Shown: positions 2,496 through 63,005, numbered from the stretch's first letter. The stretch: 64,000 nucleotides of DNA from IMGVR_UViG_3300042484_002457:62001-126000, one strand, 5' to 3'. Numbers and translations are program-made. The notes: generated by a model from the letters alone, not told the origin.

Positions 2496-3174
2496 ATTCA
2501 GCTTCGGGCACACGAGTATGTGTGTTTTTGCTTCCCAACAAAATAACAATTCGTTGTCCGACCACAGTGTCTAACATCATTACAATACATCCGCCAGCAG
2601 CTCGTATGTAACCAGTTTTGCTTATTGTATAAGTTTGATTCACTAGACGATTGGTGTTATAAATCATTGTTTTTCCAATGCGTAGCACTGCGGACTGACT
2701 GGATTCTACAATTTCTTTATAGTTTTTGGCGGCCAGTACCATGGCCACTAAGTCTCTACCAGTGCTTATATTCATTACGCCAAGCCCGGTAGAATCTACA
2801 AATTTTGTATGACGCATGTTTAATGTCCGTGCCTTGGCATTCATTGCCAGCAAGCAACTGTCTCGACCGCCAGGATAATTGCGACATAGTGTAGCTGCTG
2901 CATTATTATCACTTTTAATCAGTGCCAATTGCAGCAGCTGACGGCGTGTGTGCAGACCTATTTTTTTATCAAGATCTTGCTGTGCATCAAGAACCACCAT
3001 GGCAGTCATTAATTTAGTGATACTGGCAATGCTGCGTAGTTCGTGTGAATTTGATTCTTGTAGTATAGCCCCTGCTTGATCAGCAACCACCCAAGAATGT
3101 GCAGTGACTGTGACGGCTGATGCAGTAACTGCAAAAAACGACACCACTAACGCAAACACATAGTTCATGATCAC
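2476..3174 (-). CDS. D-alanyl-D-alanine endo/carboxypeptidase, peptidase S11 (PBP7-like)
   Basis: Signal peptide; SxxK (ASITK), SxN (SDN) and KTG motifs. Confidence 0.9.
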   Translation of the reverse strand: MIMNYVFALVVSFFAVTASAVTVTAHSWVVADQAGAILQESNSHELRSIASITKLMTAMVVLDAQQDLDKKIGLHTRRQLLQLALIKSDNNAAATLCRNYPGGRDSCLLAMNAKARTLNMRHTKFVDSTGLGVMNISTGRDLVAMVLAAKNYKEIVESSQSAVLRIGKTMIYNTNRLVNQTYTISKTGYIRAAGGCIVMMLDTVVGQRIVILLGSKNTHTRVPEAEFISRSF

Positions 3175-5222
3175 TTGCTGGTAGCTCGGTATATTCCGTC
3201 CCAGTCACTGGGCAAGCGTGCTGAACGTAGGTCTTGTATGCGTTCAATCATGGCATCATAATAGGCTTCGAACTCATGATCAAATTCTGTTTTAAGATGT
3301 TGAGCCAATTCTGCCGCCGCTGCCCACTTTTGTGCACGGTACAGTTGTAAGAATCGTGTATGATCTTGCTTGGCCTCAGCATGCGAGCCGCTGGGTGCGG
3401 CCAAAACTGTGTAGATGCGCACACCTTGTATTTTGCCTTTGACAGCAATTTCATCCAGTTCTAAAGTAAAGAAATTGGTCTGTACATGGCGTGCTGTTTG
3501 CTCACCTAGAACAATTTTGACACCATACGGCTTAGACTGGCCCTCGAGTCTTGACGCCAAATTAACACCGTCGCCAAGACAAGTGTAATCAAACCGCTGA
3601 CTGCTACCCATGTTACCCACAACAACGGTGGCACTATTAATGCCAAGACCCATACCAAAAGGTGGTACGCCTTCTCTTGTAATTTCTGCGTTGAATGCAT
3701 CTAAACTTCCTATCATTTCCAGTGCTGTTTCCACGGCGTGTCGTGCATGATCAGCATCGTCCAAGGGTGCGTTCCAAAATGCCATTTGTGCGTCACCAAT
3801 GTATTTGTCCAGGGTACCATTGTTTTCAATTATTTTGGCAGTCATAGCAGTCATGTAACGATTCATGATCCGAGTCAAGCCCTGAACGTCTTTACCGTAG
3901 TGTTCGCTTATTGTAGTAAATCCGCGAACGTCTGTAAACATAATTGACAACTCGCGTTCTTCTCCGCCTAATTGCAGCAGTTCAGGATTCTGTTGCAATT
4001 TCTCCACCATGGCCGGACTCAAGTATGTGCCAAACTGTTTCTTTATTTGTTGCTTTTGTAAGAACTCTGAAACGAACTTGACCCCGTAGGCATGCAGAGC
4101 GACCAGGATTGTGCCACTTGCAAAGGCAGTTGCGTCGAATAGCCATAAATGATTGCCAAATGCGTACCTACTACCAGCAATGCCAGCAGCACATAAAATA
4201 ATAACTGTCGCCAATCCAACATAAGTCCACCTTGTTAAAATTAATAATACAATACCTGCCACAGCAATGGCCAAGATTTCCGCACCATCTGCGTAGTCGG
4301 GACGCACAATGTTTGTGCCTGAGGCCAAGGTATCTAGTACAGCGGCCTGCAAGTGGTGCGGATATACTTCTCCTCTTGCAGTGCTGACTGGGTTGTTGAG
4401 CCCAGCTGCGGTGAGCCCAACAATGACGATTCCACCTTGGAAATCCTTTGGCAGATCAGCCAAGGAGTGCTCCTGTGGTCGGGATGCCCAATCCACCCAG
4501 ATTCTACCGTAGTTGTCTGTTGCAATTTTTCCAAATTGTGGAATTCTAACTGCTTCAATAACTCCTGCATTGACTCGAACCTGGAAGCTGGGGTCACCAG
4601 CGGCAACTCTAAGGGTTTCGAGACTGATTGAGGGGTAGAGCTGCCCGTTGACTGCAACAACCTGGGGGACTCGGCGTACGACGCCGTCCACTTCAGGCAA
4701 AGTGTTAACAATACCAATACCGCTTGCTGCTTCATTTAGGGACCTCACATTGGGTTGAATGTTTCTGTAGGGAATTCCAGGGTTGCCATCGCCTATTACA
4801 GAAACTCCTGGGCGATATGGTGGGTGCTGTGCCTTGACGGTGTTATTGGTGGCCACATGCGGAAGCACCACTGTGCTCTTTTGCAGCTGGCGAGACAAGG
4901 CAACATCTTGACCAAATCTATCAGCATCAGGCATAAAAATGTTAAACACAATTACACCAGCGTTGCGATTTTCTAGATCACGTATGATGTCGGCGTATTG
5001 ATTTCTGGGAAAAGGAAATTGACCACGTTGTTCAATTGCAGCATCGTCAATGTTGACCACGTGCACCAGTTTGCTGGTGTCTACTGGTTTGCTGGTGATT
5101 AGCGTGTCAAAATAACGCAGTCTCACGCTTTCCACAAATGCAGTGTCTGCAATACGTATGCCCAACACCAAGATCAAGGTGAAGATAGCAGTCCAAGGAG
5201 TTAGTAGTATTTTTTTCCACAT
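3171..5222 (-). CDS. CHASE2-domain class III adenylate cyclase
   Basis: Periplasmic CHASE2 (DGVVRRVP), three TM helices, FTDVRGFT, DKYIGDA, GDGVNLASRLE. Lys/Asp residues indicate ATP specificity. Confidence 0.93.
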   Translation of the reverse strand: MWKKILLTPWTAIFTLILVLGIRIADTAFVESVRLRYFDTLITSKPVDTSKLVHVVNIDDAAIEQRGQFPFPRNQYADIIRDLENRNAGVIVFNIFMPDADRFGQDVALSRQLQKSTVVLPHVATNNTVKAQHPPYRPGVSVIGDGNPGIPYRNIQPNVRSLNEAASGIGIVNTLPEVDGVVRRVPQVVAVNGQLYPSISLETLRVAAGDPSFQVRVNAGVIEAVRIPQFGKIATDNYGRIWVDWASRPQEHSLADLPKDFQGGIVIVGLTAAGLNNPVSTARGEVYPHHLQAAVLDTLASGTNIVRPDYADGAEILAIAVAGIVLLILTRWTYVGLATVIILCAAGIAGSRYAFGNHLWLFDATAFASGTILVALHAYGVKFVSEFLQKQQIKKQFGTYLSPAMVEKLQQNPELLQLGGEERELSIMFTDVRGFTTISEHYGKDVQGLTRIMNRYMTAMTAKIIENNGTLDKYIGDAQMAFWNAPLDDADHARHAVETALEMIGSLDAFNAEITREGVPPFGMGLGINSATVVVGNMGSSQRFDYTCLGDGVNLASRLEGQSKPYGVKIVLGEQTARHVQTNFFTLELDEIAVKGKIQGVRIYTVLAAPSGSHAEAKQDHTRFLQLYRAQKWAAAAELAQHLKTEFDHEFEAYYDAMIERIQDLRSARLPSDWDGIYRATSK

Positions 5223-6595: not shown

Positions 6596-7264
6596 ATGAC
6601 TAATTCCTACCAACCTTATACATACTTAATTGGCTGGGCCACCCAACATAAATTTTACTATGGTGTGCGATATGCAAAAAATTGTAGCCCAACAGATTTG
6701 TGGAGTAAGTATTTTACTTCATCAAAAGAAGTAGCAGCAATGAAAACAGTTTATGGAGATCCTGACATTATACAAGTTAGAAAAGTATTCTTAACTAAAG
6801 AGCATGCTAGACTCTGGGAAAACAAAGTGTTGCGAAGATTAAAAGTTGTGTCTCGAGAAGATTTCCTTAATAAAAACGATGCTCCTGCTCCTCCAATTAA
6901 TAATCGAGTAATGTCAGAAATTACTAAGACTAAAATTGGCACAGTGCATAAGGGAAAACCAAAATCTGAAGAGCACAAGCAAAAAATTAGAGAAGCACGG
7001 GCAAAGCAGGTCAATACCAGAAAAGGACAACGTGCAACAGAAGAAACAAAGCAAAAACTTAGAGAAGCAAATTTAGGAAAAACATATTCAGAAGATGTTA
7101 ATTCTAAAAAAGGTCAAAAAAAGGATTTGCATTGGACTTATGGAAAACCTCGAACAGAAGAAACAAAGCAAAAACTTAGAGAAGCAAATTTAGGAAAAGT
7201 TTTGTCAGAAGAAACAAAACAAAAAATGCGTGGACCAAGATTGAAATTAAAGGAAATTAAATGA
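6596..7264 (+). mobile_element. Free-standing GIY-YIG-like homing endonuclease with NUMOD3 repeats
   Basis: YTYLIGW...YYGVR N-terminus; repeated (S/T)EETKQK(L/I)REA motifs; more A-rich than flanks. Confidence 0.8.
7036..7198 (+). repeat. 46-bp perfect direct repeat (7036-7081 and 7153-7198)
   Basis: aacagaagaaacaaagcaaaaacttagagaagcaaatttaggaaaa occurs twice; encodes a duplicated NUMOD3 motif. Confidence 0.9.
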
Positions 7265-13909: not shown

Positions 13910-13937
13910 AGAGCCCCGCAAGGGGCTTTTCTTTTGG
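13910..13937 (+). terminator. Intrinsic terminator, copy 1 of a 28-bp direct repeat
   Basis: AGCCCC-GCAA-GGGGCT followed by a T-tract; identical to 15051-15078. Confidence 0.9.
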
Positions 13938-13953
13938 CAAAATTGTTGTGTGT

Positions 13954-13971
13954 TTGTAACAAAATTGTAAC
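13954..13971 (+). promoter_or_regulatory. Pho box
   Basis: TTGTAAC-AAAA-TTGTAAC, an 11-bp-period direct repeat resembling CTGTCAT-AAAA-CTGTCAT, upstream of pstS. Confidence 0.7.
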
Positions 13972-14017
13972 ACATTTTGACCTAAATACATGTGTCACTA
14001 ACACAAGGAGACTCACA

Positions 14018-15022
14018 GTGAAAAAACTATTTGCTATTCTCGTAGCCGCAGTAACAATTTCTGCACAGGCTGCAGACATCACAGGGGCAGGTGCCACCTT
14101 CCCTTATCCAATCTATGCCAAGTGGGCTGAAGGCTACAAAAAAGCCACAGGCACTGGTATGAACTATCAAAGTATCGGATCATCGGGCGGCATTCGTCAA
14201 ATCAACGCAAAGACTGTGGACTTTGGTGCCACAGATGCTCCAGTAAGCGGTGAAAATTTGGACAAGCAAGGGCAAGTACAGTTTCCTGCAATCATTGGCG
14301 GAACAGTTCCTGTTGTTAATCTAGATGGTTTTAAACCAGGTGAACTACGCATCACAGGACCAGTCATGGCCGAAGTGTTCTTGGGCACGATCAATCGGTG
14401 GAATGATCCCAAACTTGTAGCATTGAATCCAGGTAAGACATTGCCCAACACAGAAATCACCATTGTACATCGTGCTGATGGTTCAGGTACAACATTCAAC
14501 TGGACAGACTATCTTGCCACAGTAAGCCCAGAGTGGCTACAACGTGTGGGTCGTGGTGCCGCAGTCAAGTGGCCAGCAGCCACGTCAGTAGGTGGCAAAG
14601 GCAACGAAGGTGTGGCTGCCAACGTGAACCGCATCAAAGGTTCAATTGGTTATGTAGAGTATGCTTATGTCAAGAAAAACAACATGACATTCCTGCAACT
14701 ACAAAATCGATCAGGACGGTATGTTAGTCCAGATGATTCAACATTTGCCGCAGCCGCAGATGGTGCTGATTGGTTCTCAGTTCCTGGTATGGGATTGAGC
14801 ATTGTGGATCAACGTAATCCTGCGGCTTGGCCAGTGAGTTCAGCAAGTTTTATCATCATGTACAAGACCCCTGCCAACAAGGCCAACAGTGACGAAGTGT
14901 TAAAATTCTTTGACTGGGCATTTAAGAATGGCAAGAAAGATGCTGCTGACTTGGACTATGTGGCATTACCTGACACGTTGACACGTCAGATCCGTGAGCG
15001 TGTTTGGACACAGATCAAGTAA
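14018..15022 (+). CDS. pstS: Phosphate ABC transporter substrate-binding protein
   Basis: GTG start after AAGGAG; signal peptide; GAGATFP, YQSIGSSGG, RADGSGTT, IGYVE. Confidence 0.97.
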   Translation: MKKLFAILVAAVTISAQAADITGAGATFPYPIYAKWAEGYKKATGTGMNYQSIGSSGGIRQINAKTVDFGATDAPVSGENLDKQGQVQFPAIIGGTVPVVNLDGFKPGELRITGPVMAEVFLGTINRWNDPKLVALNPGKTLPNTEITIVHRADGSGTTFNWTDYLATVSPEWLQRVGRGAAVKWPAATSVGGKGNEGVAANVNRIKGSIGYVEYAYVKKNNMTFLQLQNRSGRYVSPDDSTFAAAADGADWFSVPGMGLSIVDQRNPAAWPVSSASFIIMYKTPANKANSDEVLKFFDWAFKNGKKDAADLDYVALPDTLTRQIRERVWTQIK

Positions 15023-15050
15023 CCAGCAAGTATACAAAAGTACTACAACA

Positions 15051-15078
15051 AGAGCCCCGCAAGGGGCTTTTCTTTTGG
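15051..15078 (+). terminator. Intrinsic terminator, copy 2
   Basis: Identical to 13910-13937. Confidence 0.9.
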
Positions 15079-15107
15079 TTGACTCAAAATGCCCAATTTG
15101 CTACAAT
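15079..15107 (+). promoter_or_regulatory. Sigma70 early promoter (cassette family)
   Basis: TTGACT-17-TACAAT with the conserved cccaatttg spacer. Confidence 0.8.
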
Positions 15108-15343: not shown

Positions 15344-15428
15344 GTAGTACTTGAGTACTACAAACATTTTGGTTGACTCGAAATGCCCAATTTGCTATAA
15401 TACATACATACACAGCAATAAACAGGAG
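15344..15428 (+). promoter_or_regulatory. Palindrome + sigma70 promoter + RBS cassette
   Basis: GTAGTACTTGAGTACTAC; TTGACT 15373; TATAAT 15396; AGGAG. Confidence 0.88.
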
Positions 15429-15431
15429 TAG

Positions 15432-15617
15432 ATGATGCGTAGAACAGCAGCAGATCGACAGGCAGAAGCCGCCCGTGCCCAGCAAATGACTGAACAGGCC
15501 CAACCGCGTGTCCAGGACCGCAAGACTGGTGAATACTACAACCCACAAGAAGCCTTTGACGCTATGATGAACAAGCCCGAGATCCTGGCAGTGTTCAAGC
15601 GTTTGGCCATTCGTTAA
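15432..15617 (+). CDS. Hypothetical protein
   Basis: Follows the cassette RBS. Confidence 0.65.
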   Translation: MMRRTAADRQAEAARAQQMTEQAQPRVQDRKTGEYYNPQEAFDAMMNKPEILAVFKRLAIR

Positions 15618-15626
15618 GGAGTTGAT

Positions 15627-15836
15627 ATGAACGAACGAATTAAGGAACTAGCCGATAAGGCAGGTGTACGAAGCATCTATTTCGAAGGCGAAAGTATTCA
15701 AAAACTTGCCGAGTTGATTGTGAAAGAATTTTCAAAGCAGGTTCAAATTGAAGGTCGCTTTGGGCTCGAACGAGACCAGACTTTGATTCGGCTTTGCTGT
15801 GAAAATGCCAAGAAACATTTCGGAGTTGAGGAATGA
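15627..15836 (+). CDS. MNERI/KFAELIV/HFGVEE microprotein 1
   Basis: Three conserved blocks shared with five other ORFs. Confidence 0.8.
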   Translation: MNERIKELADKAGVRSIYFEGESIQKLAELIVKEFSKQVQIEGRFGLERDQTLIRLCCENAKKHFGVEE

Positions 15837-16072
15837 ACGAACGAATTCGAGAACTTGCTGAACAGGCTGGATTTTATTTTTACGATATGCACGATATTGA
15901 CGGCCAAGACTTAGGTGAATCTATTGAAGCGGATAAGTGGTCTGTTGCCGAAAAGTTCGCCGAGTTGATTGTGAAAGAATGTCAAACGGTTGTTGAATGG
16001 GCAATCAGTGTAGATTCTACAATCGACCGAGTGCCTATGTTGATCCAAGAACATTTCGGAGTTGAAGAATGA
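15833..16072 (+). CDS. HFGVEE-family microprotein 2
   Basis: MNERIRELA...EKFAELIVKEC...HFGVEE. Confidence 0.8.
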   Translation: MNERIRELAEQAGFYFYDMHDIDGQDLGESIEADKWSVAEKFAELIVKECQTVVEWAISVDSTIDRVPMLIQEHFGVEE

Positions 16073-16224
16073 ACCTACGTGAAATGATGACTGAGCGAGT
16101 CCTGTTTGCAGTTGATGAGGATGCCCTGGCCACAGAGTTCAGCATCAGCCCGGACGAGATTGCCACACTCAGCGATCTGGACTTCCTGGAACTGTTTGAA
16201 CAGGTCACTGGATTTAATGGTTAA
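16069..16224 (+). CDS. 51-aa acidic hypothetical protein (not in ORF track)
   Basis: Starts in the junction ATGA; MNLREMMTERVLFAVDEDAL... Confidence 0.65.
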   Translation: MNLREMMTERVLFAVDEDALATEFSISPDEIATLSDLDFLELFEQVTGFNG

Positions 16225-16250
16225 CAGAGCGTCCAAAAAGGAGTATTGAC

Positions 16251-16496
16251 ATGGGATGGGTAGTTTACGAGGTTGAGTCTGGTCGCATGATCAAGTATTA
16301 CAAAACGCCCAGCCCAGCCAAGTCTGAAGTAACACGACAGAAAAATTTTACCCGTGAAATGCAGGCTCAGTACCGTAACCATCGTGTTCGTGAGTACGCA
16401 GCCTGCTCATATCGTGACTATGAAGGTCAGTTGATGGGCCTGCGTGGTGCAGACTTTAAATTTTGGCAATTTTGCAACGCACAACCCAACACTTGA
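16251..16496 (+). CDS. Hypothetical protein
   Basis: AAGGAG RBS. Confidence 0.65.
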   Translation: MGWVVYEVESGRMIKYYKTPSPAKSEVTRQKNFTREMQAQYRNHRVREYAACSYRDYEGQLMGLRGADFKFWQFCNAQPNT

Positions 16497-16521
16497 CCAA
16501 TAATGCTTGTTTTGCTATAAT
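16493..16521 (+). promoter_or_regulatory. Sigma70 promoter
   Basis: TTGACC-17-TATAAT with extended TG; ATG 9 nt downstream. Confidence 0.8.
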
Positions 16522-16530
16522 TACACTGTT

Positions 16531-16680
16531 ATGAAGCCCATATCTTTTGTACTGCAACCACCACGTCAGCGTCGACATCAAGCACTGTTTGATTCGGACT
16601 TGCCGTTTCGTGGCCGTGCGGAACAGCCCAAAACAGTGTACAAACGCCAACCCAAACACCGAAAGACTGAACAGGAATAA
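16531..16680 (+). CDS. 49-aa ArfA-like protein (not in ORF track)
   Basis: ALFDSDLPFRGRAEQPKTVYKRQPKH resembles the ArfA core ALLHDPLFRQRVE...YMRKGKH. Confidence 0.55.
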   Translation: MKPISFVLQPPRQRRHQALFDSDLPFRGRAEQPKTVYKRQPKHRKTEQE

Positions 16681-16681
16681 C

Positions 16682-16909
16682 ATGACTGTACCAAACGAAC
16701 GCACCCGAGCAGTGATACATACCGAGCGGTTCTTGAGTGATCTCCTGGACCCAAAAAAGACGCCGCGAGTACCTCGTGCCATTCGACAACGTGCCAGTTC
16801 ATTGTTGAGACATTACCCCGGTGAGTTCCACATGAACACAATTGCGGATCGCGAAGATGCTGCTGATCACAGTTTGTCAATCAAGGTTTTTGGAAAGAGC
16901 TGGTCATGA
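16682..16909 (+). CDS. BPSL0761-like hypothetical protein
   Basis: MT.P.ERTRAV...FL..L...VP..IR..A..LLRHYP. Confidence 0.6.
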   Translation: MTVPNERTRAVIHTERFLSDLLDPKKTPRVPRAIRQRASSLLRHYPGEFHMNTIADREDAADHSLSIKVFGKSWS

Positions 16910-17145
16910 ACAAACGAATTCGAGAACTTCATATACAGGCGCAACAAGAGGCATGGAATGAACCAATCGATATTGAAAATTGTGCAGTAGAAGATATAAA
17001 AGGATTCAGTCAACAAGTTTACGAAAAGTTCGCTGAGTTGATTGTTCTCGATACAATTAAAAATTGTCGTGATATGTTTATGGTGAATAGTGTTAGTTGG
17101 AATCTCTTAAATGAGAAACTAGAACATTTCGGAGTTGAAGAATGA
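16906..17145 (+). CDS. HFGVEE-family microprotein 3
   Basis: MNKRIREL...EKFAELIV...HFGVEE. Confidence 0.8.
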   Translation: MNKRIRELHIQAQQEAWNEPIDIENCAVEDIKGFSQQVYEKFAELIVLDTIKNCRDMFMVNSVSWNLLNEKLEHFGVEE

Positions 17146-17372
17146 ACCAAGTTTTAGTAAACCTGCTGTCTAATCGAGCAGTAAGATTGGGTGAGCACTC
17201 TTGGCAATGGGCCGAGAAAAAGACTGGCAATCCTTCCTTGAAAAATTCTGTGACTTCTCGTATGTTTCGGTCCGATCTTGTAGAAGTGGTCGGTGCAGAA
17301 ATGAAACTTACTGCTATGGGTCGTATACAAGCAGAACAACATTTCGGAGTTGAGGAATGTTTAAGAAGCTAA
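17142..17372 (+). CDS. Unrelated ORF carrying the HFGVEE tail
   Basis: Bounded by two junction repeats; reads through HFGVEE into CLRS. Confidence 0.65.
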   Translation: MNQVLVNLLSNRAVRLGEHSWQWAEKKTGNPSLKNSVTSRMFRSDLVEVVGAEMKLTAMGRIQAEQHFGVEECLRS

Positions 17373-17587
17373 TTGACATATTCAAAGAGCCCGAGCATGG
17401 CATAGTGAAGTTGAGTTTTATTGCCCTGGACGAGAATGGAGAACCCTATGAGGATATTGCAACAATGCCATATCATACACAATACATTCAAAGTGATGTG
17501 GAAGCAAAGTTTGTGGCATTCATGAGTTTACGGAATCACCGAGTTGTTGAAATCACAATACTAGAAGTAATTAAAACAAGTGGATAA
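17357..17587 (+). CDS. Hypothetical protein, paralog of 25856..26119
   Basis: G.VKL.FIA.D...EPYED.AT.PY shared. Confidence 0.7.
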   Translation: MFKKLIDIFKEPEHGIVKLSFIALDENGEPYEDIATMPYHTQYIQSDVEAKFVAFMSLRNHRVVEITILEVIKTSG

Positions 17588-17591
17588 TATA

Positions 17592-17801
17592 ATGAACGAA
17601 CGAATTCAAAAACTTGCTAGAGAGGCTGCTTTGGCCGAAAGCTGGGGACCCGGAGTTTGGCAAACCACATTTACTGAAAAGTTCGCCGAGTTGATTGTGA
17701 AGGAAACCATGCAGGTTGTTGCTAACCAATTGCCTAGCAATCAGTATCTTGATGTAGCCCATGCAGTAATTGAGCATTATAAGGATGACGATGTTACTTG
17801 A
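17592..17801 (+). CDS. HFGVEE-family microprotein 4, tail replaced
   Basis: MNERIQKLA...EKFAELIVKE; ends EHYKDDDVT. Confidence 0.75.
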   Translation: MNERIQKLAREAALAESWGPGVWQTTFTEKFAELIVKETMQVVANQLPSNQYLDVAHAVIEHYKDDDVT

Positions 17802-17901
17802 AATTTTACTGTTTGTTATTGGAGTAATTGGTTTGATTTTGCTCTTTCGTTGGGTAGACAAGGTTAGAACCGATCCTTTAGACTACCCTCAGGATTATTA
17901 A
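17791..17901 (+). CDS. 36-aa single-TM protein (not in ORF track)
   Basis: MLLEILLFVIGVIGLILLFRWVDK...; AAGGA RBS. Confidence 0.5.
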   Translation: MLLEILLFVIGVIGLILLFRWVDKVRTDPLDYPQDY

Positions 17902-17922
17902 GAAACATTTCGGAGTTGAAGA

Positions 17923-18090
17923 ATGAAAATAACCATGACAGGTGAGCACGAAGGTAAATCTGTAACGATTGCCGTTTGGGAATATTCTCCCGAGATTGTT
18001 AAAGGCAATCCTATCGAAGTAGAAGAAAAATTATGGCTTGCTATCAAACAGCAAATGACCCACTACATTAAGAAGGTGATTGAAGAATGA
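17923..18090 (+). CDS. 55-aa hypothetical protein (not in ORF track)
   Basis: Starts in the junction repeat at 17904; ends ...IEE with ATGA overlap. Confidence 0.6.
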   Translation: MKITMTGEHEGKSVTIAVWEYSPEIVKGNPIEVEEKLWLAIKQQMTHYIKKVIEE

Positions 18091-18365
18091 ACAAACAACT
18101 GATTAGAGATTTAGCCATCACAGGTGGCATTTATGATTGTATTTGTGATCCTTACGACAAGTTAAAGAACGGTGATTACTACAGTAGTGTAATGGTTGAT
18201 TTGGAGCGTTTCGCTGAGAAGATTGTGAAAGAATGTACTGAACAAATCAAGACACAGGGTATCAGCGCCTCTAGTGAAGATTATGGCGATTATGAAATAG
18301 GATTTAACGCAGGGTTATTTCATGCTCTCTACACAATCAAACAACATTTCGGAGTTGAAGAATGA
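18087..18365 (+). CDS. HFGVEE-family microprotein 5
   Basis: ERFAEKIVKEC...HFGVEE. Confidence 0.8.
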   Translation: MNKQLIRDLAITGGIYDCICDPYDKLKNGDYYSSVMVDLERFAEKIVKECTEQIKTQGISASSEDYGDYEIGFNAGLFHALYTIKQHFGVEE

Positions 18366-18592
18366 ACGAACGAATTAAACAAATCACAGGACAGGTACTA
18401 GATGAAATAGTGCCCGAGACTTGGGTAGCGTTGGGCTACGACAAAATCAAAGAGATTCAAAACCGCACAGCCGAGTTGATTGTTCGGGAATGTGCCAAGT
18501 TTCTAGATGAGAATTCTGGCTATGATGAATGCAACAATTCTTGGCATCCTGAACCAGAAGATTTATTACAACATTTCGGAGTTGAACTATGA
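18362..18592 (+). CDS. HFGVEE-family microprotein 6
   Basis: MNERIK...AELIVREC...HFGVEL. Confidence 0.8.
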   Translation: MNERIKQITGQVLDEIVPETWVALGYDKIKEIQNRTAELIVRECAKFLDENSGYDECNNSWHPEPEDLLQHFGVEL

Positions 18593-18804
18593 ACCATCAT
18601 GTGACAAACACAGACAATCCCGTGGACTTTCCACCAGCACCTGGCCGTGCCACAGTGGAGGTTGAACTTGATGACCACGAGTGGTACGAACTCATGAAAC
18701 TGGCACATGAACATGACATCACCTTGAACCAGTTGGTGGAACAGATCTTGCGTGACTTTGTCCAGGAGCATCATGATGGCACGTTGCCTGAATGGACCCT
18801 ATAA
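18589..18804 (+). CDS. Ribbon-helix-helix-like protein
   Basis: Strand VEVEL, helix, then LAHEHDITLNQLVEQILRDF (Arc/CopG-like pattern). Confidence 0.5.
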   Translation: MNHHVTNTDNPVDFPPAPGRATVEVELDDHEWYELMKLAHEHDITLNQLVEQILRDFVQEHHDGTLPEWTL

Positions 18805-18867
18805 GCCTAGCAATCCACGTTCGGTACGTGGCGTAGTAATATTTGAGTTAAAGTGGGGCTAAATATC

Positions 18868-19458
18868 ATGCAGGAATCAAAAATGACCACAGAAACAGAT
18901 GTTACCACAAGCCATGGGCAAGAGCTTGCAGATGCAGGTCTCATGGTACTCATGGGTGAGGTTGAAAACGATTCTATTAAACCTGTGATTGAATGGATCC
19001 TGTATGAAAATCATGTGAGCAAGAAAAAGCGACAAGAGCTATTGCTCATGATCTGTAGTGAAGGCGGAGATTTAAGTGCCGCCTTTGCCTTGATTGACGT
19101 GATGCGTAGCAGTCGTTTGCCTGTCAAAACAGTGGGACTGGGCCAAATTGGATCTGCTGGCTTGTTGATTTTTCTTGCTGGCACACCTGGTCGACGTGTG
19201 CTAACTCCCAACACCAGTATTCTAAGTCATCAGTTCAGCTGGGGCAGTGATGGCAAAGTACATGAACTGTTTGCTACCATGAAAGAGTTTGAGCTTACAC
19301 AAAAGCGCATGGTACAGCACTACAAAGAATGTACCGGGCTTGGTGAAGAAGAAATTCGCACAGCCTTGTTGCCACCCCATGATGTGTGGCTCACAGCAGA
19401 AGAAGCTCTTGCACTAAATGTGTGCGATGTAATCAGTCCAGCAATGCGTCAGGCTTGA
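18868..19458 (+). CDS. Divergent ClpP-like protease (peptidase S14)
   Basis: CSEGG, GQIGSAG (Ser), SHQ (His), HDVWLTAEEA (Asp). Alternative start at 18883. Confidence 0.85.
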   Translation: MQESKMTTETDVTTSHGQELADAGLMVLMGEVENDSIKPVIEWILYENHVSKKKRQELLLMICSEGGDLSAAFALIDVMRSSRLPVKTVGLGQIGSAGLLIFLAGTPGRRVLTPNTSILSHQFSWGSDGKVHELFATMKEFELTQKRMVQHYKECTGLGEEEIRTALLPPHDVWLTAEEALALNVCDVISPAMRQA

Positions 19459-20093
19459 CTTACAGGTTTCCCACCAATGGTTACCTGGATCACATCATTT
19501 GGATAACGCTGAGAAACTTGCTGTTTCACCTTGTCAATTGATTGTTTAATTTTTGATTGAAGTTCGCCAGGAGCAATATGTCGTTGGTCAAACTCTATTG
19601 ACCCATGCACGCCATATTGATTGTTTGGATCAACTGATTTTATCACCACAATGTTGTTTTTATAATCCTGCATCCCAGCGTCTTCTTGAGATTGTGCTGC
19701 TTGGCTTGCTGCTTGCCCGGCAGCAGAGTTATTGTAACGCTCAACATCTTTTTTGTATTCGTCACGGATATCGTTATCAACGTTGAAACCTTGATCAGCA
19801 AGGAATGAATCCATTTCTTCTTGAACTGCATCATCAATCATCATGTACGCTTCTCTACCAGCTTCCATGCCTTTTGTTAGAAAAGCCTCGGCACACTCAT
19901 CAATTTCATAAGCATCACTTTCGTTTTGACTTGCGGAGGTTGATCCTGAAATATCAAAATTAAAATGACCTTCGGCATACAACTTTGCCATTTCTTTCAG
20001 AGCCATGCCATATGCAAACGGGCCGTTATCTTCGCTGCCACCAGGTGCGAACTCAGACAAGTAACTCTCTGTGATAATATCCTGTATTTTCAT
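19449..20093 (-). CDS. Acidic hypothetical protein, probably late/virion
   Basis: TAAATA 6 nt upstream; MKIQDIITE leader. Confidence 0.65.
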   Translation of the reverse strand: MKIQDIITESYLSEFAPGGSEDNGPFAYGMALKEMAKLYAEGHFNFDISGSTSASQNESDAYEIDECAEAFLTKGMEAGREAYMMIDDAVQEEMDSFLADQGFNVDNDIRDEYKKDVERYNNSAAGQAASQAAQSQEDAGMQDYKNNIVVIKSVDPNNQYGVHGSIEFDQRHIAPGELQSKIKQSIDKVKQQVSQRYPNDVIQVTIGGKPVSQA

Positions 20094-20098
20094 AAAAC

Positions 20099-21691
20099 TT
20101 ATTTACCTCTAAGTTCGCGACCCAATGTGGCCACATCGGTCTTGGGCGCACTAGTATTACGGGCTGCTTGAACTCCGGGTCCCTTGAGGCGGGGTTCTTG
20201 CGTCACAGCGTTTAGATCAGCGGTGCTGAGTTTTGCTTTTTCGTTGCCGCCTCCGCTTTGGCTACCAATTTCAACATTGGCTTTTTCTTTGCCAGGGCTG
20301 ATTTCTACACTGAGCTTGCCTTTCTTGGGATCAGATGCCGATCCTTTTGTTTTGAGTTTTACCTCACCTTTGAGTTTGGCGGGCCAGAATGCTTCAGTTA
20401 CTAACTTGCCATTTTTTACATTGGTATAAAGTTGCACAAAGTTATAACCAAGACTTTCGATCAATGCTTCGCGCAGGTTGGGCACAGCCGAACCTTTGTT
20501 CACAGCGTTGATAATATCAGTGGTCACAGCATACCAAGCCTTGCCACCATCACTGTTGTCTGAGTTCTCAACTTTGTCACTTAGGCGTTTGTTAAACACT
20601 TGCATGATGTTTTTTGGCACAGGTTTGTTGGTCTTAACTGTGGACTCTAAGCCGGCAATCAATTCGTTACTAAATGGCATGAGGGGTACATATTCTGCAG
20701 GAACATTGTTGGGATTGATCTCATACATAGAGTTCAGCATTTCAAATGGTTGCGCAAACGTGCTCACACTGGGGTTTTGGGCACTGTCAAGAAATTCAGC
20801 AGCTTCGGGATATTTTTTTCGCACATCTGCGGGCAGCTTGATTGATGTCAAGCTTGGTGGTGCACCTTTGCCAGCAGCCTTGCTAGAAATCTTGATACTG
20901 TGACCAGTTGCATCGTTGGTAACGCTAAAACTATCAGCTAGTGGGTTGCTAACGCTTTTAGGGAAATACATAATCATTGAACCAAGATCTGTTCCAATGA
21001 AGTTGTCAAAATCTTCTCTGTTACCTTGCTTGAATGGCACAGTTCCCGCAACCAGGCCCAACACACCCAGGTATTCAGAAGCATATAACTCAATTGCTTT
21101 GACTTCTTGTGCTGATAAGCCTGCGGGAATTTCAGGAATTTGACCTTGTGTGATTTGCTTGGCCATGGCAACAACTGCTTGACCAACTTTGCCTAATTGA
21201 GCAATTTGCGGACTATTTGCAATTGCATCATACATGTCGATTGCTGGGAAACCGCCAGCTGACAAAATATTTTCAATTGGGTTGTTCATATCAGCAATGT
21301 CGGTATCCTCTGAACCAAACACATCTGATCCTTTGATCTTGATTCCTTCTGCTTCTTTGCTGCCAAATTCTACTGTTTTTAATAATTCATTATTTTTTAT
21401 GGTGTCCCCATCAGTGGTGGTCAGCACGATAGGTTTTGTCATGCCCTGCGATAACCAAGTTTTAACATTAGGTGCTTCGGCAGGATTAATAGTCACTTCG
21501 CCACCACCGGCTTTTTCAGTTGCAGTGAACGGGCTTGAATTAATGACCTTCCAAAGAAAAAGTTCTTGTCTAGTCATTAATTGCCCTGTTGTGGGATTTT
21601 TGACCGCAGACATTTTTTTTGCAGGTATTTCGGCAGCGCCTAATGCAGCTTCTGCTAGTACGTTATCGAGTAAATTGAGTAGGTCTCTCAT
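20099..21691 (-). CDS. Hypothetical late protein with possible PD-(D/E)xK-like core
   Basis: MRDLLNLLDNVLAE leader; E...NPLAD...IKISSK. Confidence 0.55.
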   Translation of the reverse strand: MRDLLNLLDNVLAEAALGAAEIPAKKMSAVKNPTTGQLMTRQELFLWKVINSSPFTATEKAGGGEVTINPAEAPNVKTWLSQGMTKPIVLTTTDGDTIKNNELLKTVEFGSKEAEGIKIKGSDVFGSEDTDIADMNNPIENILSAGGFPAIDMYDAIANSPQIAQLGKVGQAVVAMAKQITQGQIPEIPAGLSAQEVKAIELYASEYLGVLGLVAGTVPFKQGNREDFDNFIGTDLGSMIMYFPKSVSNPLADSFSVTNDATGHSIKISSKAAGKGAPPSLTSIKLPADVRKKYPEAAEFLDSAQNPSVSTFAQPFEMLNSMYEINPNNVPAEYVPLMPFSNELIAGLESTVKTNKPVPKNIMQVFNKRLSDKVENSDNSDGGKAWYAVTTDIINAVNKGSAVPNLREALIESLGYNFVQLYTNVKNGKLVTEAFWPAKLKGEVKLKTKGSASDPKKGKLSVEISPGKEKANVEIGSQSGGGNEKAKLSTADLNAVTQEPRLKGPGVQAARNTSAPKTDVATLGRELRGK

Positions 21692-21752: not shown

Positions 21753-22346
21753 ATGCCCAGTTTGATCCCCATGGTTGTTGAACAAACCTCAAAAGGCGAG
21801 CGCAGTTACGATATCTACAGTCGCTTGCTGAAAGATCGTGTGATCATGCTAGACACAGACGTTAACGAGCACACAGCCAGTTTGTTGGTTGCTCAGTTGT
21901 TGTTTCTTGAAAGCGAAAATCCTGACAAGGACATCAGTTTGTATATCAACAGCCCGGGTGGCAGTGTAACAGCAGGTATGGCCATTTATGATACCATGCA
22001 GTTTATCAAATGCGATGTGCAAACCATTGTGATGGGGCAAGCTGCCAGCATGGGTAGTCTGCTAAGTACAGCAGGAGCCCCAGGCAAACGCATGATGCTG
22101 CCCAATGCACGTCACATGATTCATCAACCATCAGGTGGCGCACGTGGCATGCAAAGTGACATTGAAATCAGCTACAACGAAATCACTTACTTGAAACGTC
22201 GACTAACTGAAATTTACGTCCGGCACAACACTGCTGGCAAAACCTATGATGACTTTGTGCGGGACATGGACCGTGACAAATTCATGAGCGCAGAACAAGC
22301 ACTTGAATACGGCTTGATTGATAAAATTATTGACCAACGTGGCTAA
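21753..22346 (+). CDS. clpP: ATP-dependent Clp protease proteolytic subunit
   Basis: [46 protein letters not shown]. Confidence 0.96.
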
Positions 22347-23628
22347 TTCTGAGATCTTCTGTAACACACCGTGGTACGAGCTACACATCTATTGGGATGG
22401 CAGCTTGGGTATCTGCTGCCAGGAAGATCACAAACTCTACGCTGGCACAGACTACAACATTGCCACCATGACCATTGCTGAGTGGTTCAACTCTGCTCCA
22501 GTGCAGCAATTTAGGCAAGCAATATTGGGCAATACTCCAGTGAGTGCATGCAGAAGATGTTATGTTGAAGAATCTCATGCCGGAAAAAGTCGCCGCTTGA
22601 AAAGCAATCAAAAAAGTGTGATTTTCATCCAGGCATTTCAAGAAAGCTTTGAACAAAGCCCATGGCGAAAGCACTTTGATTCGTCGGGACTGACTGCCAC
22701 ACAGCCTATTGACATACACGTGGACCTGGGCAACTACTGCAACTTGGCCTGCAAAATGTGCAACGCTCGGGCCAGTTCGCAAATTGCTGCCCAGGAAGTC
22801 AAGTGGGGTATTGAATCTAGTAGACCTTACCTGGGGCAAGACTGGACCAAAAATGCTGATACTTGGGCCAGCTTCAAGCAGCAATTGTTAAATATACCGG
22901 GCCTGAACAATATTCACTTCATGGGCGGTGAAACATTGTTGACTGATCGGTTTGAAGACTTGGTAGACTGCATGATTGAACATGGTCGGTTTGATCTGTG
23001 TTTTAGTTTTGTCACCAACGGCACAATTTTTCAACCTAAACTGATGGCCAAGCTGTCAAAGTTTCGTCGTGTGGGCATTGAAGTTAGCATAGAGACTGTG
23101 AGCGAACACAATGCCTATCAGCGACAGGGCACAGACACTGCCCAGGTGCTGGCCAACATTGAAAAATATCAAGAGTGGGACAACGGCTCCAACATCACCA
23201 TTACTCTTCGTCCAGCAATCAGTGCACTAACAATTGGTCACTATCACACTCTACTGGCGTATGCATTGGCCAATAAATTCATAATCAAAAGTTTGTTGGT
23301 AAACCGACCTGAATATCTAGATGTAAAGATTCTACCTGAATCAGCAAAAAGCACATATATTCAATACTATGAAAATATTTTGCAAGAACTTGAATATGTG
23401 TCAGTTAAACTAGACTATAACGAAAGTGATCCAAATAACTTTCGAGAAATAATAAAGCAACAAGCTCGGATGTGTATAAACATGCTGGGTCAAAACCAAC
23501 CAGGCAACATTGACCAGTTACAGAAACAGTTTGTTGAACATTGCAAAAAGTGGGATCAGGTCTACGGATACAATGCTGTAAAGCTTTATCCTGAACTTGC
23601 TGAGGTATTTGATCGATATGGCTACTAA
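22339..23628 (+). CDS. Radical SAM protein with N-terminal SPASM/twitch-like domain
   Basis: CNLACKMC and GGE; N-terminal C.PW...CC...CRRC. Confidence 0.88.
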
Positions 23629-40313: not shown

Positions 40314-40368
40314 TTGACCAAAATTTCCCAATTTGTTATAATATACACATAGCAAAGCAAAACAGGAG
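40314..40368 (+). promoter_or_regulatory. Cassette promoter + RBS without palindrome
   Basis: TTGACC-17-TATAAT-atacacatagcaaagcaaaacaggag. Confidence 0.88.
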
Positions 40369-43132: not shown

Positions 43133-43565
43133 CATCTATTCTGACAACGATGTGATATCTGACACTGGTGAAAGCCTTTACATCAGTACTGGTGCTACTG
43201 GTGCTATTGGCGCTGCCGACTCAAATGCTTATTCATGGAATGCCAACAGTTCTATAGATTGGAACAATATCACTATTGGATCTTCCAATATTGCTGGCAC
43301 CAATGGTACCATGATTCGTCCGTCTGGACGTTTGGAACTTCAAGGTGAAGATGCTGACATAAAAATCAATGGTCGAAGTTTGATGGATGCTATTGATGCC
43401 CTTGAGCAGCGCCTTAACATTCTAGTACCTAATCCTGAGCTGGAAGCAGAATGGGATGAATTACGAGAGCTGGGCGAACGTTATAGAGCGTTGGAAAAAC
43501 AATGTACCGAGAAAGGCAACATGTGGAAAAAACTAAAGTCAATGCCACCACCAACCAAACCATGA
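43107..43565 (+). CDS. Hypothetical protein
   Basis: Low-complexity N-terminus, coiled-coil C-terminus. Confidence 0.7.
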   Translation: MSKNANTINIYSDNDVISDTGESLYISTGATGAIGAADSNAYSWNANSSIDWNNITIGSSNIAGTNGTMIRPSGRLELQGEDADIKINGRSLMDAIDALEQRLNILVPNPELEAEWDELRELGERYRALEKQCTEKGNMWKKLKSMPPPTKP

Positions 43566-62612: not shown

Positions 62613-62790
62613 ACCTCGTCCTTTAAGTATTCCAATTGTGGAATTGAACAATAGACTAGATACAATCTTTGGTGAAAAGCCAAAGAAACAGCGTTGGATA
62701 CCACCAGCATTGCCCGAAGACATGCAAGGTATCAAAAGCTCGTTTGAGCAGCAACTGGGTGTGAATAAACTTCCACCTGGGCGCACATGA
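62596..62790 (+). CDS. Hypothetical protein
   Basis: MSKGSRPRP...D.IFG; GGAGA RBS. Confidence 0.6.
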   Translation: MSKGSRPRPLSIPIVELNNRLDTIFGEKPKKQRWIPPALPEDMQGIKSSFEQQLGVNKLPPGRT

Positions 62791-63005
62791 AATTATTCAA
62801 CCAGGTATATCTAGGAATGAATCCCACAATACAACAACTGATGCAACAGGCAGGCACTGACACCAGCGGCAAATGGATGAGTATAGACAATGCCGAAAAG
62901 TTTGCTCAGTTGGTAATTGCAGCGTATAATAAAGAACTTGACGAGTCTTGTCAGGAAAGCAAAAGCAAACTTGGCTACAGCCGAATTGGATTGGAAAACG
63001 TATGA
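62787..63005 (+). CDS. Distant member of the MNERI/KFAELIV family
   Basis: MNPTIQQL.QQAG...EKFAQLVI. Confidence 0.55.
   Translation: MKLFNQVYLGMNPTIQQLMQQAGTDTSGKWMSIDNAEKFAQLVIAAYNKELDESCQESKSKLGYSRIGLENV

Follow-up and report, generated by a model that had tools for sequence, protein, structure and literature searches.

Between positions 15,627 and 18,804 of the window, as the 64,000-nt stretch of DNA analysed here is called (IMGVR_UViG_3300042484_002457:62001-126000), a series of small genes is joined by a short sequence that recurs from junction to junction. The question raised by this array is whether the repeat, together with two further conserved blocks inside the genes, provides points at which genes and gene halves are exchanged. 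The array is flanked by the genes for PstS and ClpP and lies behind early-type promoters, among small ORFs with no annotated function (Table 1). The promoter at 15373..15401 is the likely source of transcription for the initial part of the array, and the terminator/promoter composite that precedes it belongs to a promoter cassette family repeated in the window. The window also carries T4-like genes, namely for a clamp loader, baseplate wedge and tail-fibre, and by the cyclase gene Melnitz and HTVC008M are the phages closest to it. As part of the explanation preferred below, the locus is quite probably a hyperplastic early-gene region of a T4-like lake myovirus of roughly 210 kb.

Table 1. Features of the array and its surroundings (positions counted from the first letter of the window).
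Feature	Position	Strand	Size	Remarks
NUMOD3 homing-endonuclease-like ORF	6596-7264			~8 kb upstream of array
PeSL-like terminator/promoter composite	15050..15107	+		GC hairpin and T-run, then sigma-70-like promoter TTGACT-17-TACAAT; upstream of array
Early-type promoter	15373..15401	+		TTGACT-17-TATAAT, 11/12 matches, TG extension
ORF preceding array	15432..15617	+	61 aa	followed by GGAGTTGA at 15618-15625
Copies of AACATTTCGGAGTTGA	15814, 16050, 17123, 17338, 17904, 18343, 18570	+	16 nt	exact match
Family gene 1	15627..15836	+	69 aa	S block; M ~15705-15731; J 15814-15836
Family gene 2 (P0001)	15833..16072	+	79 aa	M ~15950-15982; J 16050-16072
Cargo ORF	16069..16224	+	51 aa	start within the junction's ATGA overlap
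Non-family stretch within array	16251..16909	+		two ORFs and internal promoter
ORF of non-family stretch	16251-16496	+	81 aa	
Internal early-type promoter	16493-16521	+		in non-family stretch
ORF of non-family stretch	16682-16909	+	75 aa	stop overlaps start of family gene 3
Family gene 3	16906..17145	+	79 aa	C-module 17048-17122, replaced in contigs L085, L094 and L095
Cargo ORF	17142..17372	+	76 aa	family's HFGVEE tail only; J copy at 17338
Cargo ORF	17357..17587	+	76 aa	start at variant junction GGAATGT
Family gene 4	17592..17801	+	69 aa	M ~17677-17708; non-canonical tail HYKDDDVT
Hydrophobic micro-ORF	17791..17901	+	36 aa	followed by non-coding J copy 17904-17919
Cargo ORF	17923..18090	+	55 aa	start at non-coding junction copy
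Family gene 5	18087..18365	+	92 aa	M ~18210-18236; J 18343
Family gene 6	18362..18592	+	76 aa	M ~18467-18493; J 18570, tail HFGVEL
Last cargo ORF	18589..18804	+	71 aa	weak ribbon-helix-helix / Arc / HicB-like similarity; array end
ClpP	18853-19458			after last cargo ORF
Distant family-like gene	62787..63005	+		outside array; N half and AEKFAQLVI block fit family profile; lacks HFGV tail; adjoins clamp-loader gene

The core of the repeat, a 16-mer, has seven exact copies in the window, all on the + strand and at the positions listed in an earlier note on this DNA, while shuffled sequences gave a mean of 0.07 copies (maximum 1). No extra copy was found in the whole window with two mismatches permitted. 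The reading frame at the junction, xAA CAT TTC GGA GTT GAr GAA TGA (x-H-F-G-V-E-E-stop), was found to be as that note had proposed, and the J (tail) block, ..CAT TTC GGA GTT GAA GAA TGA, has a triple role in that it codes for HFGVE(E) of one gene, holds the GGAG ribosome site of the next and as a rule closes with an ATGA stop/start overlap. The continuation (A/G)GAATGA, also described there as usual, follows the core in five of the seven copies, the exceptions being 17338 (GGAATGT) and 18570 (ACTATGA). With the variant at 17338 the upstream frame therefore runs on as ..EECLRS, an ending also present in P0061. The copy at 17904 follows the TAA stop of a membrane-like micro-ORF and, as had been recognised, encodes no tail.

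The six family ORFs share the blocks MN(E/K)RI.. and ..FAELIV.E(C), with HFGVE in five of them, and the segments between are unrelated, unalignable and variable in length, in agreement with their first description. Each gene, coding for 65-95 aa, is built of an S block, a variable N-module, an M block, a variable C-module and the J block, where S (start) is ATG AAC GAA CGA ATT.. and M (middle) is GAA AAG TTC GCC GAG TTG ATT GT. The family is very large: clustering at 50% identity gives 8,307 clusters for E<=1e-3 (1,633 for E<=1e-10) and >7,900 matches in the 90% collection, and arrays were found on ~80 diverse contigs. No significant relative of the proteins was found in Pfam, PHROG or PDB, matches in PDB and BFVD being non-significant or uncharacterised only, and none of the family matches has a toxin or immunity annotation.

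Conservation of the blocks extends to their nucleotides, with synonymous sites ~90% fixed, in codons that are minor ones elsewhere. In counts from 257 unique genes, where the binomial tests assume an independence of genes and ends that does not fully hold, the fixed M codons are AAG (142/157, background share 0.34), TTC (130/157, 0.26), GCC (143/157, 0.24), GAG (140/157, 0.22) and TTG (148/157, 0.29), and CGA (136/143, 0.27) and GGA (183/186, 0.29) are likewise fixed in blocks. Among HSPs of 90-97% identity the mismatch rate was 1.4% in the blocks, 13.2% in the family modules and 5.0% in other DNA; the comparison of synonymous sites that the earlier note had proposed thus finds frozen blocks around segments that do not align. 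Since the block codon variants show no clustering by genome, the seven identical copies in the window represent a population-wide consensus and not local homogenisation.

The modules themselves are found in many combinations. A set of 317 unique proteins contains 223 clusters of N-modules joined to 190 of C-modules, which gives 17 four-gamete violations (complete 2x2 rectangles), and one C-module, that of family gene 2, is joined to 48 different N clusters. Exact recombinants of modules present in the window were found as proteins on other contigs, namely P0002 (N17592 + C18362), P0003 (N17592 + C18087), P0004 (N16906 + C15833), P0007 (N16906 + C18087), P0037 (N16906 + C17592), P0016 (N18362 + C15833) and P0006 (N15833 + C18362). 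Duplicated M blocks and whole-gene fusions, the footprints of unequal exchange, were also seen.

Comparison with related contigs places the breakpoints in the same blocks. Homology ends no more than 15 nt from a block in 24 of 39 internal cases and in 24 of the 27 that lie in arrays, where 14.9% would be expected from the share of array positions; it is in the three blocks that swaps, gains and losses have their breakpoints, as had been anticipated. One contig (L085) equals the window except for one 75-nt C-module, swapped between M and J, with flanks that are 100% and 99.9% identical. Two others (L094, L095) have a 504-nt deletion between two M blocks, with window positions 17706-18209 missing; the crossover is inside the M block, where the alleles of the window agree over just 9-14 nt (L094). 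An identity of this length is short for classical homologous recombination. Segments that begin within M and finish within J are shared with L001, L006 and L070 at 97.5%, 99.2% and 86.2% identity respectively, that of L006 matching window 17676-17927 with M and J as its borders. Joints seen when assembled contigs were matched to the window have short sides and for the most part stem from other family genes of the community; one that "goes back", from 18382 to 17676 with 31-nt sides, is explained equally well in this way. The order of the array is not generally stable in relatives; stability is confined to near-identical contigs that belong to one strain, so that within a single population exchange is not rapid.

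The junction also leads into genes outside the family. ORFs starting at J comprise 125 non-family and 54 family genes, and homologous cargo pairs have unrelated upstream modules in 22 of 36 cases. In the window, five ORFs have their start at the junction without belonging to the family (16069, 17142, 17357, 17923, 18589), as had been reported, and the family tail occurs on unrelated ORFs, exemplified by ORF 17142, whose match to the family profile is limited to the last 10 residues. The earlier suggestion that the junction admits cargo agrees with the presence of unrelated ORFs behind J in differing contexts. On these sequence comparisons, the interpretation that halves within the array and neighbour genes are shuffled at the three blocks is largely supported.

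The conservation could also be read in terms of expression, recombination at the blocks then being its by-product. J would serve translational coupling through its SD, fixed 11-nt spacing, ATGA overlap and a possible CAUUU–AGAAUG hairpin, S would be an efficient initiation region and M would be bound by some regulator. This is considered rather unlikely, although several features of the junction accord with it. GGAGTTGA makes up half of the core. Outside the family tail it serves as the ribosome site of family gene 1 and also occurs at 40365 and 44048, so that the repeat in part represents the SD and spacer preferred by the genome. The GGAG site lies 11 nt before the next ATG at 171 of 190 junctions, conservation ends exactly at the ATGA in family-to-cargo junctions (junctions between two family genes remaining conserved through S), the full core is kept in the non-coding copy at 17904, and the block variants do not group by genome. 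The RNAs of the seven junctions are less structured than shuffles, as expected of open ribosome sites, and a 6-bp CAUUUC/GGAAUG stem is possible in two copies. However, none of the folding z-scores (-1.3 to +1.7) is significant, there is no match in Rfam, and the F codon alternates between TTC and TTT without co-variation of the pairing base (GAA 151, GAG only 4). The M block lies mid-gene, with no ribosome-site role, and yet is frozen like J in minor codons; neither a promoter match nor a stable fold was found in the J, M and S blocks. Constraints on the ribosome site and its spacing account at least in part for the J block. An expression role accounts for the conservation but not for the mosaicism, and therefore complements exchange at the blocks without replacing it.

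It is very unlikely that the mosaics are artefacts of De Bruijn assemblers joining family genes at shared blocks. The comparators are all assembled contigs from short-read metagenome assemblies, and the blocks, common to many genes per sample, have 10-40x the contig depth of the modules; however, the exact common stretches at the blocks are merely 16-28 nt, less than the final k-mers that assemblers commonly use and far shorter than reads. The same chimera and swapped module recur in independent assemblies (L094 from JGI and L095 from ENA, 99.8% identical over 4 kb, with the module also in L085), recombinant proteins are found on many contigs of several sources (P0021 on 17, P0014 on 10, P0011 on 8 and P0095 on 14), and contigs from several samples show the window's own arrangement unchanged. 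Slightly less probable still is an ordinary tandem paralogue family without unusual exchange, in which the blocks meet a need of the protein and the modules have diverged. The motifs are indeed near-invariant across thousands of relatives and, by sequence position, map to helix 1, to where the long helix begins and to the C-terminal end of the last one in a confident predicted fold (P0001, pLDDT 90.4), but protein constraint leaves unexplained the synonymous sites in minor codons, the four-gamete violations, the C-module with its 48 partners, the in-array homology ends at blocks and the tail on unrelated ORFs and non-coding DNA. A dedicated enzyme, whether an integron-like recombinase, a block-cutting homing endonuclease or a diversity-generating retroelement, is also highly improbable, as exchange takes place at all three different blocks and not at one site, the repeat resembles neither an inverted repeat nor a hairpin, the window ORFs examined include no recognisable integrase or reverse transcriptase, and the length-variable, unalignable modules are unlike the A-directed substitutions of a retroelement. 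The NUMOD3-like ORF upstream and the striking invariance of the core are the features that would suit such an enzyme.

The explanation that fits best, and is considered quite likely as a whole, is that family cassettes are exchanged by homologous recombination at codon-phased blocks. Across the phage gene pool these blocks recur in thousands of genes and, being codon-phased and so widely shared, would always recombine in frame with a ribosome site already present. The partners may be paralogues within one genome or co-infecting phages, only ~10-30 nt of identity would be needed, and the products would be N- or C-module swaps, deletions and fusions, with any ORF between two blocks travelling as a cassette. 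As the analysis turned up neither a dedicated recombinase among the ORFs examined nor a hairpin or RNA family, ordinary phage homologous recombination is the likely mechanism, the joining presumably being carried out by the phage's general recombination machinery. Of the earlier note's proposal, the blocks as recombination handles are upheld by breakpoints, mosaicism and frozen sites; the "system" it named should not be taken for dedicated machinery, as general homologous recombination suffices. The frozen nucleotides may be kept as handles or for another nucleic-acid-level reason, and their conservation would persist as cassettes with intact handles keep spreading. The proteins themselves may act as early binders directed at the host, in which a helical scaffold stays constant and the surfaces vary.

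The closest known parallel is found in the PeSL (promoter-early stem-loop) cassettes of T4-type phages, short, highly conserved repeats that, like the blocks here, are scattered in hyperplastic regions; they are intergenic promoter and terminator composites, and mini-circles have been experimentally shown for them (Arbiol et al., 2010, PMC2839356; Comeau et al., 2014, PMC4122927). In both cases, in a T4-like hyperplastic early region, repeats are points of homologous exchange between otherwise unrelated sequences, small early ORFs are inserted, deleted or replaced, the repeats give expression signals to the inserts, and breakpoints between related genomes coincide with them. The window even has PeSL-like promoter cassettes of its own, such as that at 15050-15107. 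The handles of the array differ in lying within coding sequence or across a stop/start overlap, in being codon-phased, in lacking a stem-loop and in supplying a ribosome site instead of a promoter. With such handles the array therefore shuffles protein halves as well as whole genes, unlike PeSLs, and by analogy it is a coding-sequence counterpart of PeSL shuffling.

Other systems share single features with the array. In gp38 of the T-even adhesins, glycine-rich motifs lie between hypervariable segments that are easily interchanged, the conserved parts forming the structural core (Trojet et al., 2011, PMC3157838). As here, constant coding motifs separate hypervariable segments exchanged between phages, but those are virion adhesins for host range with one gene per genome, whereas the array holds a family of early-region proteins in tandem, and its J block couples translation and admits unrelated ORFs. 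Swapping guided by conserved motifs was reportedly also described by Tetart et al. in 1998 for the His boxes of gp37/38. No similarity of sequence or fold to gp37/gp38-type fibre adhesins was found in Pfam, PHROG, PDB or BFVD. In polymorphic toxins (CdiA-CT), stand-alone cassettes recombine with the gene and take the place of a variable C-terminal module (Zhang et al., 2012, PMC3482391). A conserved coding motif borders the variable C-terminal module in both, but the toxins are large proteins secreted by bacteria, with an immunity gene linked to them, and the phage proteins are <100 aa, variable in both halves and give no indication of toxin or immunity. Integrons need the IntI integrase and folded attC sites, which are imperfect inverted repeats. 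They resemble the array in having small promoterless, mostly unknown ORFs at a repeated junction with expression driven from upstream; the array, however, joins by ordinary short homology, with no IntI among the ORFs scanned and no attC-like fold. Diversity-generating retroelements consist of template and variable repeats of equal length that differ at adenines, with a reverse transcriptase, whereas the array's modules are unalignable and of unequal length, and no reverse transcriptase was found among the ORFs scanned.

It is tentatively proposed, with a good deal of doubt, that the blocks are under selection as handles and that the family is a population-wide, enzyme-free cassette library of lake T4-like phages. 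If so, thousands of N- and C-modules, together with hitch-hiking ORFs, would be continually rebuilt into in-frame, translation-ready early microproteins, whose likely use would lie in tracking host targets or defences as these vary. The array would then be a coding-sequence counterpart of both integrons and PeSLs, in which synonymous sites would be selected for evolvability or for the spread of cassettes.

The family genes of the array (15627-18804), named by their starts, follow a common layout consisting of an S block at the start, a variable N-module, an M block in the middle, a variable C-module and a J block, a repeat which encodes the HFGVE(E) tail together with the GGAG ribosome site and the ATGA stop/start overlap of the next gene. 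The 16-mer core of the J block, AACATTTCGGAGTTGA, occurs in seven identical copies, all on the + strand, and no extra copy was found in the window with up to two mismatches tolerated; its chance expectation from dinucleotide-preserving shuffles is a mean of 0.07 copies. The frame of the junction is xAA CAT TTC GGA GTT GAr GAA TGA, giving x-H-F-G-V-E-E-stop, with the TGA overlapping the next ATG. The continuation (A/G)GAATGA is present in five of the seven copies, while the copy at 17338 runs on as GGAATGT, so that the upstream frame extends to EECLRS, and that at 18570 as ACTATGA. The seven identical copies, their usual continuation and the functions combined in the junction were described in the earlier note and were all recovered here, as were its three blocks, read here as MN(E/K)RI, ..FAELIV.E(C) and HFGVE, in six ORFs, five of which carry the HFGVE tail, and its five junction-started ORFs unrelated to the family (cargo). 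One of these, ORF 17142, resembles the family profile in its last ten residues alone, and the core copy at 17904 is, as claimed, non-coding and sits after the stop of a 36-aa hydrophobic micro-ORF.

The sequence GGAGTTGA on its own serves as the ribosome site of the first family gene and is present at two further places in the window, so half of the core corresponds to the favoured Shine-Dalgarno sequence and spacer of this genome. The micro-ORF overlaps the end of ORF17592 and is followed by the non-coding junction copy. As the C-module of ORF17592 has a normal HFGVEE tail on other contigs (family proteins P0054, P0101 and P0156), the micro-ORF looks to have been inserted between CATT and TCGG of a former tail. 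It is also observed that the M (CGAGTTGATTGTG) and J (GGAGTTGAAGAATG) blocks have the heptamer GAGTTGA in common (e.g., 15959-15973 and 15821-15835), which may be due to chance, to common origin or to its being an M-J exchange site.

Arrays of different contigs are mosaics of one another, with breakpoints at the blocks. Contigs near-identical at P0001, the product of ORF15833, represent the same strain with the same array order and are informative only in the case of contig L085. This matches the window at 100% identity as far as 17047 and at 99.9% from 17123 on, the sole difference being the 75-nt C-module of ORF16906, with change-over points at GAGTTGATTGTTC (left) and ATTTCGGAGTTGAAGAATGA (right). 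Its alternative C-module is also found in contigs L094 (JGI) and L095 (ENA), which track the window from the J block at 15810 to 17705 at 92% and resume at 18210; 504 nt are deleted, with the crossover within the M block (GATTGTGAA.GAA), resulting in protein P0003. Stretches in common with the window also run from block to block in contigs L001 (15950-17359, 97.5%, M to J), L006 (17676-17927, 99.2%, M to the non-coding J copy) and L070 (18470-18592, 86.2%, M to J). Given the span of the L006 stretch, the C-module and the micro-ORF travel together. Non-redundant loci were also compared all against all (identity of 93% or more over 150 nt or more). Of 39 internal homology ends, 24 are at most 15 nt from a block motif, as are 24 of the 27 within arrays, bearing out the enrichment expected by the earlier note. 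Only 14.9% of array positions are that near a block (binomial p about 4e-11 for the 39 ends and 3e-17 for the 27, the ends deriving from 15 distinct locus pairs and not being fully independent). In the Logan contigs of lake runs, blocks are covered 10-40 times as deeply as modules and every joint is located at a block edge, which, for assembled contigs, fits the shuffling picture.

The genes themselves are mosaic, with proteins of other contigs being exact recombinants of window modules: P0002 (N-module of ORF17592 with C-module of ORF18362, or N17592 + C18362), P0003 (N17592 + C18087), P0004 (N16906 + C15833), P0007 (N16906 + C18087), P0037 (N16906 + C17592), P0016 (N18362 + C15833) and P0006 (N15833 + C18362). 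When 317 unique proteins were cut at the M block, their constant ends trimmed and the halves clustered at 60% identity, 223 N and 190 C clusters were obtained. C15833 is paired with 48 different N clusters, and N16906 and N17592 with seven C clusters each. In 17 cases, two N and two C modules occur in every one of their four pairings; the sample is skewed to query-like modules, which inflates the top cluster but cannot create such rectangles. There are also fusions and proteins with duplicated M blocks (P0028, P0045, P0090, P0128, P0137, P0172 and others), apparently generated by unequal exchange.

The blocks are in phase with the codons and fixed at the nucleotide level. In a survey of 257 unique family genes from about 90 loci, with the variable parts of the same genes as background, block codons were nearly fixed, mostly in codons with a minor share of that background, extending to many loci the synonymous identity that had been remarked upon for the window. 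Since the patterns used to retrieve the loci were fully degenerate back-translations, they did not select for codon choice. In the M block the fixed codons are AAG for K (142/157, background 0.34), TTC for F (130/157, 0.26), GCC for A (143/157, 0.24), GAG for E (140/157, 0.22) and TTG for L (148/157, 0.29); in the S block CGA for R (136/143, 0.27) and CTT for L (115/143, 0.20); and in the J block GGA for G (183/186, 0.29) and GTT for V (176/186, 0.41). Mismatch rates in HSPs of 90-97% identity were 1.4% for blocks, 13.2% for family modules and 5.0% for other DNA, a mildly circular comparison as the blocks are defined by likeness to the consensus. Rare block codon variants did not cluster by locus, so the consensus holds across the population, and the seven identical copies of the window are to be expected from it. 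On the same ground, local homogenisation of the copies by concerted evolution within the genome was dropped. An internal start in the M block was also dropped, its V codon being GTT, GTG, GTC or GTA without preference.

Unrelated ORFs begin at the junction well beyond the window. Approximately 80 non-redundant loci contain 207 J motifs when one mismatch is allowed, comprising 184 family tails, 17 at the ends of other open frames (some GTG-started family members and several unrelated proteins) and six non-coding. An ATG lies at GGAG+11 in 171 of 190 junctions, and the junction ATG is the start of a non-family ORF (at least 30 aa) in 125 cases and of a family gene in 54. Information profiles show conservation ending exactly at ATGA in family-to-cargo junctions and running approximately 35 nt further, through the S block, in family-to-family junctions. 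Homologous cargo pairs have unrelated upstream modules in 22 of 36 cases. Many cargo proteins also end in ..GVEE or similar, probably an imprint of the ribosome site of the next gene on the coding sequence. A conserved cargo protein of approximately 300 aa with no Pfam match starts at the junction in three loci (L020 4374, L027 7037, L028 4225), and a 280-aa junction-started ORF (L003 948) has a sub-threshold match to Pfam Fer4_12 (4Fe-4S; E=0.007, below the curated cut-off); cargo is thus not limited to microproteins.

The window comes from a metagenomic contig of 209.5 kb found in lake-water metagenomes. No match was found among 50,697 phage records for the locus by blastn or for P0001 by tblastn, and so there is no isolate comparator. 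Genes for a clamp loader, a baseplate wedge protein and tail fibres are encoded in the window, as is an unusual auxiliary set of cyclase, PstS, radical-SAM/SPASM protein, SAM synthetase (MetK) and NAD synthetase, along with ClpP. The only phage relatives of the CHASE2-cyclase are in the T4-like Methylophilales phage Melnitz and Pelagibacter phage HTVC008M. The array is flanked by PstS on one side and ClpP on the other. T4-like genes in the window, and early-type promoters ahead of the array, identify the locus as a hyperplastic early region in the genome of a T4-like myovirus. Promoter and leader form a 55-81-nt cassette present in ten copies; these resemble the promoter-early stem-loop (PeSL) cassettes known from T4-type phages and may give this genome a second group of recombination sites.

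Features of the array and its surroundings in the window
Feature	Position	Strand	Remark
16-mer core copies	15814, 16050, 17123, 17338, 17904, 18343, 18570	+
Family genes (starts)	15627, 15833, 16906, 17592, 18087, 18362
Junction-started unrelated ORFs (starts)	16069, 17142, 17357, 17923, 18589
GGAGTTGA alone	15618, 40365, 44048		15618: first family gene
Micro-ORF	17791-17901	+
CHASE2-adenylate/guanylate cyclase	3171-5222	-	39.6% identity to Melnitz, 37.9% to HTVC008M
PstS	13934-15022
Radical-SAM/SPASM	22318-23628
SAM synthetase	32944-34050
NAD synthetase	43502-44386
Early-type sigma-70 promoters at array	15079-15107, 15373-15401, 16493-16521
GC hairpin with T-run	15050-15071		Directly abuts promoter 15079-15107
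Early-promoter cassettes	15076, 15370, 24852, 25223, 26155, 39094, 40019, 40311, 40866, 45490		TTGACC/T-N17-TATAAT; conserved leader ending ..AAACAGGAG
NUMOD3 homing-endonuclease-like ORF	6596-7264	+	Repeated NUMOD3 motifs, also visible as DNA direct repeats; PHROG homing-endonuclease family match
ClpP-like proteases	18853-19458, ~21753-22346	+
Two ORFs between ClpP-like genes	19449-21691	-	214 and 530 aa, of unknown function
Tail-fibre-like genes and a neighbouring gene	52035-53572, 59421-59557 (+); 48895-49737 (-)		51-nt periodic repeats in the tail-fibre-like genes
ORF adjoining clamp-loader gene	62787-63005	+	72 aa

Gly/Pro-type triplet repeats were also seen in a gene neighbouring the tail-fibre-like genes. 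The ORF adjoining the clamp-loader gene aligns to the family profile in its N half and in an AEKFAQLVI block (hhalign probability 93%); it is without the HFGV tail, and its end, KLGYSRIGLENV, is almost that of a cargo ORF in contig L031.

A profile of the six genes matched more than 7,900 proteins among the matches listed in a 90% collection, and 8,307 clusters at 50% identity in an exhaustive library, 1,633 of them at E<=1e-10. Among 148 top representatives, the end HFG[VI].. is present in 139, FAELIV in 133 and MNERI in 123, and the sequence between the blocks is different in all. Pfam and PHROGs gave nothing significant for family and cargo ORFs, the only hint being a weak RHH/Arc/HicB similarity of ORF 18589. 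The ESM Atlas returned solely unnamed viral clusters for the family, a PDB fold search no match below E=0.26, a BFVD fold search solely uncharacterised proteins of uncultured Caudovirales, and a literature search on the motifs FAELIV and HFGVE nothing relevant. A confident AlphaFold2 model (40-sequence alignment, pLDDT 90.4) has a helix (3-12), a beta hairpin (15-32), a long helix (36-59) and a further helix (64-75). By their positions in P0001, the blocks are predicted to lie in helix 1, where the long helix begins and where the last helix ends, with the hairpin and the region between helices being variable. This constant scaffold with variable surfaces, and the early position, suggest, speculatively, that the proteins are host-directed binders.

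Final assembly k-mers and reads are longer than the repeats at the blocks, and the same chimeras are present in independent assemblies and sources, so it is unlikely that the mosaics are chimeras of assembly. Conservation of the blocks purely at the protein level is contradicted by the protein mosaics, the DNA breakpoints, the frozen synonymous sites and the junction cargo. A role as expression signal would plausibly account for J and S, though not for M, and would complement exchange at the blocks as the main explanation rather than replace it. The array lacks the defining features of a DGR, an integron or nuclease-driven exchange, and these were rejected or are considered improbable. No recombinase was found among the ORFs scanned, and the NUMOD3 ORF lies 8 kb from the array. 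RNA folds of all seven junctions contained no hairpin or stable structure, and an Rfam scan yielded no family.

Exchange at the blocks would proceed through the general homologous recombination of the phage or through copy-choice during replication, and would take place both between paralogues (the deletion in L094) and between co-infecting genomes (the import in L085). The identity available for it is probably short; exact stretches common to the window's own copies are 16-28 nt, and the L094 crossover only 9-14 nt. As the blocks keep the codon phase, and the Shine-Dalgarno sequence and stop/start overlap lie within J, every product would be in frame and translationally coupled. The consensus could persist by the spread of cassettes with intact handles, that is, by selection at the cassette level, other possible reasons being very fast gene-pool mixing or an added expression function.

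In T4-type phages, shuffling at short conserved sequences is known for intergenic promoter cassettes (PMC2839356, PMC4122927) and tail-fibre adhesins (PMC3157838). PeSL shuffling is the closest known system, with the same logic and genomic setting (PMC2839356, PMC4122927); however, PeSLs are intergenic composites of promoter and terminator, whereas the handles of the array lie inside genes. The gp38 adhesins have intragenic motif-guided swapping like the array, but are an unrelated virion protein (PMC3157838). The array merges features of both types and has, in addition, a dual-coding junction, all within a family that is very large and whose motifs have no literature match.

With handles lying within genes, in phase with the codons and doubling as ribosome site and stop/start overlap, protein halves and whole foreign ORFs are swapped with frame and expression kept intact. 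The fixation of block codons that are minor elsewhere gives a DNA-level signature, open to measurement, of selection or of very fast gene-pool mixing, and the frozen sites make the old question of whether phage mosaicism arises via evolved linkers directly testable. As the family comprises thousands of clusters with no database name, a large share of the small "ORFan" genes of freshwater phages may form one combinatorial pool. The family is a natural library of small variable-surface scaffolds, the targets of which, in host takeover or anti-defence, are worth finding.
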